Assembly: GCA_013115145.1 (NCBI GenBank)
Contig: JAAPAO010000016.1
Span: 75,601-139,600, forward strand
Source of the DNA: Perkinsus chesapeaki ATCC PRA-425
Lineage: Eukaryota; Protista; Perkinsozoa
Reading direction: 5' to 3'
DNA: 64,000 nt
The notes below the pieces were generated by a model. It was not told the DNA's origin and did not search any database. It saw only the letters and a program-made list of their open reading frames with translations. This document shows, in pieces, positions 1 to 62,930 of this stretch. Position 1 is the first letter of the stretch; every line of letters begins with the position of its first letter. Both the position numbers and the translations under genes were made by a program.

Positions 1-3000
1 ATGGCAGATGAGGCCCTACGGCACCTCGGGGCGCCGGTGCGGTCTCGCGTTAAGCCTGACTGCACTGACGCCAGCTTTCAAGTTGATGTGGTAGACATTG
101 CGGCCCTGAAGAAAGGCATTGTTGATTCGAAGCTCCTTATAATGCGATTACAAGATCTTGTTAAAGAAAAAGACCAGCAATTATCGACCATAGTGGAGGA
201 GCTCGCGCACAGCGAAGAGCTGGATAAGATGGCCGTACTCGGGTCGCTGAAAGCAACCTTGCACCATGGCGAGCGAACCCAGGACAGGATACATGGCGCA
301 GCAGAGAGCTCACTTGACGAGCTATGGAAGTCGGAGGACCTCGGCCGAGTCGCCAAAATATCCAAACGAGCTTCACGCAACCCATTAAACCGTGCTTCAA
401 CCTTTATGAATCTTAGCGTCGAGGAGATACTTCGGACGCGCGATGTGGGAGTTCAGGCGGACATGTCATTCTCGGTCGTTCGGGCGTCCGTCGTGATGAA
501 ACCAAAAGGGCGACTCAGAGCGTTCGTTAAAGACAAACTTTTACAAGACGTGCGGGAGAAGGCCAAACGGAGGAGTCGTCGATCCGTGAGTGCAGGAAAC
601 AAGGGGCCCGATGATGAACCCAATGCTCAATCCGCGCATGCTAAGATACCGGGGGAAAGGCAGAGAAAGATCAAGGTAGCCGACAACCACAGAGAGAAGC
701 CAGCGAGCTTCGACGACGAACCGAGTGATGAAGGTGTTCAACCCGACAAGGTGGGGAAGAATGTTCAGCGCAATAGCAAAGGAAAGCTTCTTACTTGGTC
801 GGACGATCCGTTACAGGCAGGAAAAGGACCGGCTGGTGTGGGCAAGGCAGAATCTAGTGAGGGTGACATTGGGTTAATTGAGCAGCCCGAGAGGGAGCCG
901 GGTGAATTAGGGGAGGTGCGAGGTGAAACAGAGAGTAAACCGGAGACCGTGTTGTCTGAAAAGGCAAGAAGTCCAGATGGTCAAGTAGGCATTCCGGAGA
1001 AGGTATCCAAGATAGAAAGCAGTCTAGGCGGAACACAGTCTGTATCTTGTTTGCCGGAGGCACAAGCCGCTCCACAAAGGGCACCCGATGCCGGCGATAC
1101 GCGTTCGAAAGCAGAGCATTACACTGGCAATAGTGGAGAGCTAGGCGTATCAGACTCGGCTGACGATAAGGACTGCATTGACAGAGCTGTGCAACCAAGA
1201 GCCAGTGGAGCAAAACCAGCAGTAGAGGGTGATTTAACAAAAGATACCCCGGCCGCTACTGCGGGAGCAGTTGACACCGAGCAAGGCGCTGCCGTCGATC
1301 GTAAGGAGCTACCCCGCTCCCCACGATCTGGCGAGGTGCCAACCGCAGAGTCAGCCGAACGCCAAAGTATGAACCGTACACCGCATAATATCTACACCAC
1401 AGAAGATGTAGTGGAGGAGGATGCAGATGAAGATTCGAGCTCATCAGCGGCCTCAGCGTCAGACGATACGGTTCGCATGAGCGGCATATGCGCAAAGCGT
1501 CATGTTGGCACTCTGTCAGGTGGAATCCCAAGTCTCCGAAAAGTCGCTAGCATCAGTTGAAGACTATTCTGAACTAGAGGAGGATAAGGCAAAAGCTGTT
1601 CACCTAGCCCCTGTGGAATTCTGTCTTTAGATTATTATGTGCCACGACGCGGTGATGAACACCATAGTTTCGGTCGCTTTCGGGGCGTTCCGCCATCTCG
1701 AAGAGGGTCCTGATGGAACTTGTTCCTCGGTCGTGACCGGCCCCAGCGCTGCCGTGCAGGCTCAACACAGAGCTGTTGTAGGTAAGCAGAACTAAACGTG
1801 GGACTAGGTGAAAAGTTTTTGTGAGTATAGCTCATCTGTGGGAAGAGATGTGCGCCAAATCAGCGGATGTCAAGGACGCCGAAAGTGATGACTCGGAGCA
1901 AGGCAGCGATGGCAAAGTCGAGGTACGGTTGCAAAGGTTAACAGCGAGGATTTCCTATGACTATGATTCTAGTTGCTGATTAAGGAGAACATGCTTCTCA
2001 AGTTCGAAAAGAAGGAACTAGCAGAAGCACTGAGTCGCGCTACGGCAGTAGACTCGAATACGATATCACTCTACCGCACAGAGTAAGAATGTGGTGTCTC
2101 TCCTGTGAAGCGTATCAGCCGCCCTATGGTGCATCACTGCTAGGTATGATGTGGTGATGGGTGAGTTAGGCAGGCTAAAGTGTGCTAATGCTGAGCTTGA
2201 GTAAGCAGACGCGATGGTCTTGCGCAACTTGACTCAATCAGGGCGACTTTACTGATGAAACGGCGTGACGGAGATAGTGAAGATGAAGGAGTCGGCAGCG
2301 AACCGTGCACAGTACGCCGGGATGAGCTGGAATGGCTAAGACAGCAGGTAGGTGATGTACAAAGATTGGACACTTAAAATAGCGCGGATAATAACTTTCC
2401 GATGCGGGGACTCGAACCCCGGTCGCGTGGGTGAGAGCCACGAATCCTAACCAGCTAGACTACATCGGAGCCTGCATATTTATCCTGATCTCCCTCAGCT
2501 TTCATCTCAGGTTACTGCCCAACGCAGCACTGTCGCCGCACTCGAAGTGGCTCTCGAAGCCCAATCAGCCTCTCTTCGAAGTTTAGCCGATAGGTATGCT
2601 TCCTTCTGTACTGCAACATCTACCGAATGCTGCCAGGCACAGTCGAGCTACTCAATCCCGCAATCCCCAGAGCGAGGATCAGCGAGGAGTTGCGGTGCGT
2701 CAGTTAACCGACTACCAGCCTTCAGGCGCAACAGGGCCACTTCCAGCCAACGACGGACATACGTACGGAATCCGTATTGCGTATAGTGCCCTCCTCTCCC
2801 TGGGCATAGCTTCACGTCGAACTCTCAGGACAGTGGTACCGTTGCCGGGTATAGTGGCTATTGAGGAGACCAAACTCAAGGGCCTTCTGAAGGAGGTTGA
2901 GTCACGGTAAGTACCCGGAATTGCTACACTGATGGCGGTTATCAGTCATCATCATCACAGTTCTAGCATCGCGATCAACGTCAGCGAATTCGTCGACTTG

Positions 3001-3746
3001 TTCTCCCATTGCTTAGATCTAAGGAGGTCTTGGAACTGCGAGCCGAAGTTTGTTCATCGAATCAGATGCTACACCACCGGTGAGCTTATTCGCCAGCGAA
3101 GTTTTGGCATTGCTCCTTGTGTAGTGGCACCACATCCGAGCAACGAGATCAGGTCGTACTCAGTCGGAGAGAGTATGCAGACCTCCTGGGCGAAGCACAA
3201 GAAGCTCGACAGCAGCGCACTGTGCCGGACCTACACCGAGAGATAGACGCCCAAGTGTACGAGAGGAAGATGTTCGATCTACGGGCGCAGATAGCTTCCT
3301 ACAAGGTAGGCCTCTGGCCTCAGCTGGATCATTCACAACTAAGATCAGGCCCAGTTAGTTGCCATGAAGCTCGTCAACAACATTCTGCCTGTCCTAGAGA
3401 AACGTGGACTGTTGAAGAGACTCATCGAGGGGGCGGAAGGAGACCGGCTTGAAGATATTGTAACAGTGCAAGTAGGCGTCACAGCCATGGACTTGATCTC
3501 GACTGCGCGCTACAGGAGCTCAAGATTCGAGACTTAAGGCGCACAATTGCTAACTTGATCTGCTTGCACCGGGCAGCGAAGCCATTCACAGACGGCCTAG
3601 AGGTGGTCCTGTCTGCAAAGCCCATACGGCCGCCACCGAAGCAACGGTACCTCAGCCTCGAGGATATCAAATCAGATGATGATAGCACTAGTGCTGACGA
3701 CTCTCCTCGCCTCGGTCCACCAGGCACAGGCTGTAGATTACAGTAA
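1..3746 (+). CDS. Multi-exon hypothetical coiled-coil protein with long acidic low-complexity first exon; ends approximate
   Basis: 519-aa ORF 1..1560 followed by GT-AG bounded exons with heptad-like sequence (LLIKENMLLKFEKKELAEALSR; ELEWLRQQ|VTAQRSTVAALEVALEAQSASLRSLADR; REYADLLGEAQEARQQR). Whether all pieces form one gene is not certain. Confidence 0.55.
2397..2469 (-). tRNA. tRNA-Glu (anticodon CTC), intact, intronless
   Basis: Reverse complement TCCGATGTAGTCTAGCTGGTTAGGATTCGTGGCTCTCACCCACGCGACCGGGGTTCGAGTCCCCGCATCGGAA: 7-bp acceptor stem, anticodon stem CGTGG/CCACG around CTCTCAC, T-loop TTCGAGT, A and B boxes. Confidence 0.97.
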
Positions 3747-62692: not shown

Positions 62693-62930
62693 CCACTAGC
62701 TGAGAAGGTAATAAAACAGAGCTGGTATCCAAAAGGTACCAAGTTCAATTCCCAGCCCCCCCCTTCTGCCTTTCTACAACGCAAGTGTTAGGAAGCGCGG
62801 TGGAAATAACTTCGCGGGTTGTTGTTGTTATTGTTGTTGACAGTGCGCTGCTACGCACCATCATTTATTACTGAATAAGGCAGCTCCGGAGGGGCGGCGT
62901 AAGTAGCTCACGCACGTCTCAGTCGTGAAG

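Follow-up and report, generated by a model that had tools for sequence, protein, structure and literature searches.

Relics of the 3' third of tRNA genes, mostly antisense within introns of Perkinsus chesapeaki, are retained across Perkinsus species

A stretch of 64,000 nucleotides (nt; hereafter the window, numbered from its first letter) was analyzed from a 139.6-kb contig, JAAPAO010000016.1, of Perkinsus chesapeaki, a parasite of shellfish. A first-pass annotation had reported that several spliceosomal introns in this DNA contain tRNA-derived sequence antisense to the host mRNA, as well as one intact intronic tRNA gene. Both were borne out, the intron around the tRNA gene being putative, and all of the intronic pieces proved to be antisense. 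Apart from the intact gene, the pieces correspond to the 3' third of a tRNA gene and are called relics below. Eight relics were counted, six of them located in five introns (those of POLE2, DIM1, PCYT2, Lon, and SBDS, with two relics in PCYT2) and two in gene flanks; six introns are involved when the host of the tRNA gene is included. No further relics were found in the window by searching with a profile built from nine window sites only, the orthologues from relatives having been excluded from its building.

Syntenic DNA of P. olseni (L001 and L003) covered window 4.4-43.5 kb and that of P. marinus (L005) covered 44.6-63.8 kb, such that every relic site in this single window was compared in just one other species. 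The comparative exon model comprises 95 introns with a total of 19.3 kb, and 45 of these are short (70 nt or less, median near 44 nt). Relics were found in three of the 45 short introns, the remaining 42 having none, and relics or the intact tRNA gene in six of the 95 introns overall.

The sole tRNA gene called in the window by ARAGORN and Rfam is a tRNA-Glu(CUC) gene at 2397-2469 on the minus strand, which matches the Rfam tRNA model over its full length at 61 bits and has a T stem paired at five of five positions. It lies antisense within a publicly annotated plus-strand gene (520 residues, window about 1848-4150) and in the middle of a putative 163-nt GT-AG intron at 2348-2510 of the plus strand. 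Frame continuity is the evidence for this intron, open frames of 49 and 91 residues being joined in phase 0 by its removal. A P. olseni orthologue of the host gene was searched for and none was found, and no homology or RNA support was obtained for the intron. The tRNA-Glu(CUC) gene would be an ordinary example of a nested intronic tRNA gene, whereas the eight relics are not genes. It suggests that tRNA genes can reside in such introns, and it may represent the starting state of the relics.

The reality of the introns in DIM1, PCYT2, Lon, and SBDS, also proposed in the first-pass annotation, was upheld by frame and contiguous homology: removal of each joins conserved peptides in frame, and relatives have an intron at the same codon. 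The relics in them were recognized by alignment and profile match. The DIM1 (rRNA adenine dimethylase) intron is a 47-nt, phase 0, GC-AG intron at 13791-13837 of the plus strand, and its removal creates the in-frame junction KVDFE/EWDAM with positions 169-199 and 203-257 of Pfam RrnaAD on either side. The intron is filled by a relic at 13797-13831 on the minus strand. About four of the 45 short introns in the comparative model are of the GC-AG type (13791, 8839, 13649, and 53088), and the P. olseni orthologue of the DIM1 intron uses GT. The Lon protease intron (36017-36062, plus strand, 46 nt, phase 0, placed by frame and homology) is likewise filled by its relic, at 36026-36060 on the minus strand, which has an exact B box (GGTTCRANNCC). 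The 211-nt, phase 1 intron of PCYT2, a cytidylyltransferase gene, lies at 25762-25972 of the plus strand, again placed by frame and homology, and carries two minus-strand relics. Relic 'a' (25764-25799) is at the intron 5' end and has an exact B box; relic 'b' (25927-25962) is at the 3' end and has a T stem paired at four of five positions followed by TTTT.

The SBDS intron (61696-61759, minus strand, 64 nt, phase 0) was placed by frame and by Pfam matches to SBDS_N and domain II on either side, and has its own TACTAAC-like branch site. Its splicing was confirmed from RNA, as RNA-derived contigs of two public runs skip exactly 61696-61759. The relic at its donor end (61734-61759, plus strand) has lost the acceptor strand. 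The tRNA-like part had been said to fill most of the introns of 46-64 nt; this holds for DIM1 and Lon but not for SBDS, where only about 40% is so occupied. A fragment at 8979-9016, previously listed as related sequence, is indeed related and is also intronic, making POLE2 (DNA polymerase epsilon subunit B) the fifth gene with a relic-bearing intron. This intron, modeled by comparison with P. olseni L001, has the donor GTAGTA at 8967 and extends on the plus strand to an approximate 3' end at 9533. The relic, found by alignment and nhmmer at 8977-9012 on the minus strand, begins 10 nt past the donor and consists of AGGTC, T arm, acceptor strand, A73, and TTTT.

Two other listed fragments, at 59743-59765 and 62730-62761, are related as well. 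The first belongs to a relic at 59739-59769 on the minus strand that is not intronic; it is situated some 50-60 nt beyond the stop codon of the gene for a 173-residue protein, is in sense orientation relative to both neighboring genes, and is followed by TTTTT. The second belongs to a relic at 62730-62762 on the plus strand, antisense to SBDS and 40-70 nt upstream of its start codon, that may lie within a 5' untranslated region (UTR) intron or outron.

When aligned with the tRNA-Glu gene in the tRNA sense, the relics display in register AAGGTC of the variable loop, a B-box-containing T arm, and a C-rich acceptor strand with A73, ending in CA. They thus extend over approximately tRNA positions 44-73, often with an oligo-T terminator in addition. 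Including the orthologues from P. olseni and P. marinus, 14 relic copies were compared, and TTTT was present within 15 nt after A73 in five. The aligned variable loop, T arm, acceptor strand, and TTTT indicate the 3' third of a tRNA gene together with its terminator, and not mature tRNA, since CCA was found on none of the relics. We are highly confident that the fragments are relics of tRNA genes.

The relics no longer encode tRNA. None was listed with the Rfam tRNA model, even at E values up to 10 in searches of 100-256 nt, and ARAGORN also called none. Given the silence of Rfam on small stretches around three relics, their tRNA likeness rests on alignment rather than on structure. The T stem is paired at only two or three of five positions in 11 of the 14 copies; well-paired stems occur in the P. 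marinus copy at L005:12210-12241 (five of five) and in PCYT2 relic 'b'. Matches to an A box upstream of the relics were at chance level, although the test is weak, the real tRNA-Glu gene having three mismatches to the pattern used. No trace of the tRNA 5' two-thirds was seen in any relic, even where non-coding sequence is available for it; in the short introns the 5' part would fall in exon. No tRNA genes were found in the orthologous loci of the relatives. With no detector call, mostly unpaired T stems, and no A box, D arm, or anticodon arm, a functional tRNA gene was rejected as the identity of any relic.

The relics predate the split of P. chesapeaki, P. olseni, and P. marinus and therefore are not recent gains. 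The first-pass annotation had named a lack of tRNA similarity at the same positions in close relatives as the result that would speak against it; no such lack was found, and the similarity is present. The window-built profile matched the orthologous DIM1, PCYT2, and Lon introns of P. olseni; its P. marinus matches were the SBDS intron, the position following the 173-residue gene, and the one upstream of SBDS. In four of five orthologous introns, a B box with no more than one mismatch is kept on the antisense strand, for which the chance is about 3.7e-6 at the background rate of other orthologous introns, and the B box is kept at six of seven orthologous places overall. For 54 other orthologous intron pairs, the best 14-mer identity was 9.1, compared to 8.9 for random pairs, and ordinary orthologous introns are thus saturated with change.

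The P. olseni orthologue of DIM1 is interrupted at the equivalent position by a 50-nt intron, in which GGATCGATCCC is kept. The PCYT2 intron of this species is 59 nt, versus 211 nt in P. chesapeaki, and shares the 13-mer TCGAATCCCACCC with relic 'a'; the 5' part of its single relic resembles 'a' and the 3' part resembles 'b'. The Lon intron is 237 nt in P. olseni, versus 46 nt, and keeps GGTTCAAATCC about 25 nt past the donor. In P. marinus, the 66-nt SBDS intron has retained the B box together with an acceptor-like strand and TTTTT, and the orthologue of relic 59739-59769 (L005:12210-12241) has its perfectly paired T arm and TTTTT. The orthologue of relic 62730-62762 keeps GGTTCGATTCC. An SBDS homologue sought as a deeper outgroup (P0131) was uninformative for intron position, being intronless or a transcript. 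A separate conserved segment was noted about 110 nt upstream of the SBDS start codon (window 62800-62875, minus sense; L005:9820-9895), where a 19-nt block, CCGCGAAGTTATTTCCACC, and short blocks next to it are identical between P. chesapeaki and P. marinus. As ordinary non-coding DNA is randomized between these species, the blocks may be a promoter or UTR element.

What is retained is a module of about 30 nt. Orthologous relics are 83% identical in the B box and 42-47% in the flanks. For non-orthologous relics, B-box identity was 0.77-0.78, compared to 0.83 for orthologous ones, and identity in the tRNA flanks was 0.47-0.52, compared to 0.57; outside the module it was 0.28-0.29, the random level. 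Orthologues are therefore barely more alike than non-orthologues, and all 14 copies lie near one consensus of about 30 nt. Each copy has a B box with zero or one mismatch to the consensus. C50, G53, T55, C56, A58, and C61 are invariant in all 14 copies, and C69 and C72 are present in 13, an invariance that at the B-box positions is partly built in, the relic set having been found via B-box likeness. T54 is replaced by A in two P. olseni relics. Intron lengths have changed up to five-fold between the species while the module was held. Neutral decay over a time that randomized the introns cannot yield one shared consensus, and the module must have been held by selection or by homogenization; its non-neutral maintenance we consider very probable. 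Two unlinked relics, that of DIM1 (13797-13831) and that at 59739-59769, have an identical 23-mer, CGCGAGTTCGATCCCGGGGTCCG, whose T stem is non-pairing (GCGAG versus CCGGG). The orthologous relics of P. olseni and P. marinus deviate from this 23-mer.

The module also has a characteristic placement. All seven intronic copies in the window, the six relics and the tRNA gene, are antisense (two-sided sign test, p about 0.016). Five of the six intronic relics adjoin the donor, with the B box 6-23 nt away, and the donor-proximal B box persists in introns of 211, 237, and 564 nt. The 42 ordinary short introns have weakly conserved donors, no clear branch consensus, and a G+T-rich sense strand (G 0.30, C 0.20; GGG in 11 of 42 versus CCC in 3 of 42). 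The antisense bias might reflect a fit of the G-rich antisense tRNA tail to this G+T-rich make-up, and the tiny introns may be filled by their relics because they are held at a minimal length of about 44 nt that leaves room for little else. A role of the relic as branch point, suggested by the resemblance of mRNA-sense TCGAAC to CTAAC, was rejected: in P. olseni Lon about 200 nt separate the motif from the acceptor, PCYT2 'a' places it at the 5' end of its 211-nt intron, and the SBDS intron has a TACTAAC of its own.

The B box by itself is weakly enriched, and the case rests on the extended alignment and on cross-species retention. Exact B-box matches in the window number four, versus 0.78 expected, and those with one mismatch number 29, versus 22 expected. 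Among the latter, eight are antisense in introns and two are sense in introns, compared to about 3.4 expected for each (Poisson p about 0.02 for the eight). Three other matches were set aside. The exact B box at 63357 is a chance match in a coding exon, the intron boundary there being fixed by RNA at 63367-63416. The antisense intronic match at 46260 has no tRNA-like flanks and a very weak profile score. The match at 26379-26389 on the plus strand (GGTTCTAATCC then CCG), located in another PCYT2 intron, also lacks tRNA-like flanks, scores very weakly, and is probably due to chance; it would be the only sense-oriented intronic candidate. The search was repeated on 39 kb from two further contigs of P. 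chesapeaki (L009 and L010), a small sample of low power, and gave no strong matches and three weak candidates inside annotated genes of L010, two of them antisense.

The best overall explanation, in which our belief and doubt are about evenly balanced, is that the relics are ancient tRNA-gene tails that have been kept non-neutrally, the B box serving as a TFIIIC-binding site comparable to the extra-TFIIIC (ETC) sites of other eukaryotes. Taken by itself, TFIIIC binding as the reason for maintenance is a tentative proposal drawn from sequence comparison, to which we give slightly less than even credence. The B box would still bind TFIIIC without driving transcription, as at ETC sites, and the relics would provide a compact genome with many TFIIIC anchor points inside gene bodies. 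A DNA-level site rather than an RNA fold is indicated because T-stem pairing is not conserved and because a conserved relic located outside introns is sense-oriented. Human TFIIIC220 makes base-specific contacts with bases that include G53, T55, C56, and C61 but not T54 (PMC11811891); the invariant relic bases match these contacts and the variable T54 is uncontacted, in keeping with TFIIIC. The retention of B boxes, one of three models in the first-pass annotation, is accordingly upheld by the four of five orthologous introns that keep the B box while ordinary introns were randomized, a result which does not extend to the TFIIIC binding that the model also contained.

Several observations weigh against ETC-like maintenance of the relics. 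A DNA-level site needs no fixed strand, yet the intronic copies are all antisense. With orthologues counted and PCYT2 'b' left out, the distance between B box and donor is 6-25 nt in nine of nine donor-proximal copies, and 15-25 nt in eight of them. Near-invariance reaches beyond the 11-nt B box to C48, C50, C69, C72, and A73, which is not obviously explained by TFIIIC alone, and the invariance within the box is in part a product of how the relics were found. The 23-mer common to the DIM1 and 59739-59769 relics suggests relic-to-relic gene conversion, at least occasionally, or a recent common donor in P. chesapeaki, and conversion could keep relics alike without function. Finally, the POLE2 relic in P. 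olseni has lost the B box and the acceptor part, and only a piece located 3' of the B box in the mRNA sense remains; retention is thus not absolute.

Gene conversion is one alternative. Concerted evolution without function, in which repeated ectopic conversion from tRNA genes and among relics pulls the relics toward tRNA sequence indefinitely, would be harmless in the direction from tRNA gene to relic and selected against in the reverse direction. The identical 23-mer with its differing orthologues speaks for it, as do the near equality of orthologous and non-orthologous relics, the holding of the entire 3' third instead of the B box alone, and the freshly perfect T arms in some copies (five of five at L005:12210-12241, four of five in PCYT2 'b'). 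Donors would be plentiful, tRNA genes being very numerous in Perkinsus, with more than 500 copies of five tRNA gene types in P. marinus (PMC3706591). However, most T stems are unpaired, and the GCGAG versus CCGGG of the shared 23-mer rules out living tRNA genes as direct donors. Nor would conversion tracts yield a B box that is better kept than the rest of the module (0.8 versus 0.5), and targets of 25-35 nt are short for efficient ectopic conversion. We regard this explanation as rather unlikely. We are still more skeptical of an element acting in RNA, by which the antisense relic, read as G runs and then ATCGAAC some 20 nt after a weak donor, would help the spliceosome to define the tiny introns, in the manner of G-run enhancers or of the tRNA-like nimtRNA elements of human introns. 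Such an element would account for the antisense orientation of seven of seven intronic copies and for the constant donor spacing of the nine donor-proximal copies, long introns included. It would also suit introns with weak donors, no clear branch consensus, and, in the 42 ordinary short ones, a G+T-rich sense strand; and tRNA-like sequences can enhance splicing in human introns (PMC7722341). Yet a conserved relic has the same B box in sense orientation downstream of a stop codon, 42 of the 45 short window introns are spliced relic-free, and the human precedent needs a cloverleaf fold that the relics do not have. The invariant bases are, moreover, exactly the TFIIIC-contacted ones (PMC11811891).

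How the relics came to lie in introns is a related question. An insertion into an exon of a DNA fragment comprising the 3' part of a tRNA gene and its flank could have founded the introns, the flank supplying the donor and the anticodon region the acceptor. This origin, which we consider unlikely, is compatible with any of the functions proposed and is opposed to decay of a tRNA gene within an older intron. In five of five donor-side window relics, including those of the 211- and 564-nt introns, the donor follows the tRNA 3' end at a distance of 0-12 nt, and the same spacing recurs in the P. olseni Lon (237 nt) and P. marinus SBDS introns. The 5' two-thirds and A box are missing, and the relics have one consensus in common, as anticipated for copies of one source. 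On the other hand, no target-site duplications or terminal repeats were seen by eye, no systematic search having been run, and all of the elements are old, with no fresh insertion to show the mechanism. Two relics lie outside introns, the mid-intron tRNA-Glu gene fits insertion into an existing intron, and the 5' parts would likewise be lost over time if selection acted on nothing but the B box. The alternative of intronic antisense tRNA genes decaying in place, a second model of the first-pass annotation, is possible; no relic has a recognizable 5' part, and even in long introns the relic is placed next to the donor. The third model, in which reverse-transcribed tRNA fragments become new introns, was not sustained in that form. 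Recent retro-insertion of mature tRNA fragments, or mere chance resemblance, could draw on a fragment length of about 30-40 nt that resembles tRNA 3' halves, on the weak B-box enrichment (29 versus 22 with one mismatch), and on the failure of the Rfam tRNA model to score any relic. But CCA is absent, genomic oligo-T trailers are present (five of 14 copies), the elements are older than the three-species split, and relics occupy these sites also in relatives in which change has saturated the ordinary introns. Retention of the orthologous B boxes by chance has a probability of about 4e-6. The cross-species matches, this retention statistic, and the oligo-T trailers bring retro-insertion and chance close to refutation, and we consider them highly improbable.

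Known systems resemble the relics in part. ETC sites of yeasts and mammals, and the chromosome-organizing clamps of fission yeast, are isolated conserved B boxes without an A box or gene, as are the relics, in which a B-box consensus free of A box and gene and conservation between species are both seen at the sequence level. Chromatin boundary, looping, or condensin/cohesin functions have been proposed for the TFIIIC bound at such sites (PMC11811891). Known ETC sites, however, are few, mostly intergenic or near promoters, and not visibly tRNA-gene tails, whereas the relics, known from sequence alone, combine the B box with variable loop, acceptor strand, and terminator, lie inside tiny introns, and are strand-biased. 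The tRNA-derived short interspersed elements (SINEs) such as Alu and MIR, often intronic, likewise place a polymerase (Pol) III promoter element of tRNA or SINE origin inside Pol II genes. Such a promoter element can be bound by TFIIIC, as in Alu (bioRxiv 10.1101/455733), and can retain a role once the SINE itself is dead. Transposable elements in human introns show an antisense orientation bias (PMC3517506). SINEs have an A box, body, and tail, are retroposed, and form a small part of long introns, in contrast to relics of 25-35 nt that hold the 3' third only and make up as much as nearly the whole intron. A tRNA-derived SINE was rejected as their identity, only the 3' third being present and the end being an oligo-T trailer, not a poly-A or long interspersed element (LINE) tail.

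The nimtRNAs of human introns (Hoser et al. 2020, PMC7722341) are tRNA-related, intronic, and have a proposed, position-dependent effect on the host intron, and have intronic tRNA likeness in common with the relics. They are of mitochondrial origin, full-length, and cloverleaf-dependent, whereas the relics are nuclear-type 3' thirds that do not fold; an enhancer of this type that requires a cloverleaf was rejected, as the relics have no cloverleaf and unpaired T stems. Introners of dinoflagellates, Micromonas, and Aureococcus, repeat families that form whole introns, are partially similar, and have been described in the related alveolates Amoebophrya, Symbiodinium, and Polarella (PMC7789003, PMC11282704), neither paper describing tRNA-derived introns. 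Introners are young, near-identical, mostly DNA-transposon-like with terminal or direct repeats, and differ between strains. The relics are common to three species and share only the tRNA-like core of about 30 nt, apart from the one pair with the 23-mer; an introner element, young, near-identical, and absent from relatives, was therefore rejected, the orthologous introns of P. olseni or P. marinus carrying a relic. In the literature searched, no published description of tRNA-derived intron content was found for Perkinsus or elsewhere.

Other features of the window were noted in passing. Three assembly gaps, at 32791-32888 (intergenic), 33863-33956 (within a Lon intron), and 57476-57573 (within a mitochondrial-carrier intron), touch none of the relics; each is flanked by DNA colinear with that of P. 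olseni or P. marinus, with the exons joined in frame. At 57476-57573, an RNA contig leaving at 58240 resumes with letters matching 57319-57348 (27 of 30), indicating that the mRNA joins across the gap; the three letter differences are allelic-looking. This intron (57350-58241, minus strand) measures 892 nt including the gap, whereas its P. marinus counterpart (L005:13373-13418) has 46 nt. Between DIM1 and the next gene there is a single-exon gene for a subtilase (Peptidase_S8; 14799-15815, minus strand). No counterpart was found in the syntenic P. olseni DNA, where DIM1 directly precedes the homologue of window 16889-17761, and the subtilase gene may be a lineage-specific gain or loss. Tandem intronless FAD/NAD oxidoreductase genes (Pyr_redox_2; 21232-22605 and 22798-24174, minus strand) are about 50% identical to each other, are conserved in P. 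olseni and in Logan contig L006, and are intron-free amid intron-dense neighbors. For the exons of an AD-domain gene (63134-63485), RNA contigs of run X1 gave a perfect match and also a second version with about 26 differences over some 260 nt, which may be a diverged allele or a paralogue. Perkinsus genomes have been reported as polyploid.

Perkinsids may keep a genome-wide family of tRNA-tail modules of about 30 nt, mostly antisense beside the donors of minimal introns, to which TFIIIC, or a different factor recognizing the tRNA 3' third either in DNA or in antisense RNA, would dock. Such a family, a doubtful but possible generalization, would connect Pol II gene bodies and splicing with the Pol III machinery or the tRNA pool, and might have founded the introns themselves. 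If the B boxes are bound, a compact protist genome would be seen to set many TFIIIC anchor points in its genes through the mere promoter core of dead tRNA genes, kept in minimal introns, which would link three commonly separate fields: Pol III factors as genome organizers, the evolution of intron content, and the turnover of tRNA genes. If gene conversion is responsible instead, the relics would clearly exemplify how pseudogene fragments and a multigene family evolve in concert over long times. Under both explanations they provide dated, alignable markers in Perkinsus introns that are otherwise saturated with change.

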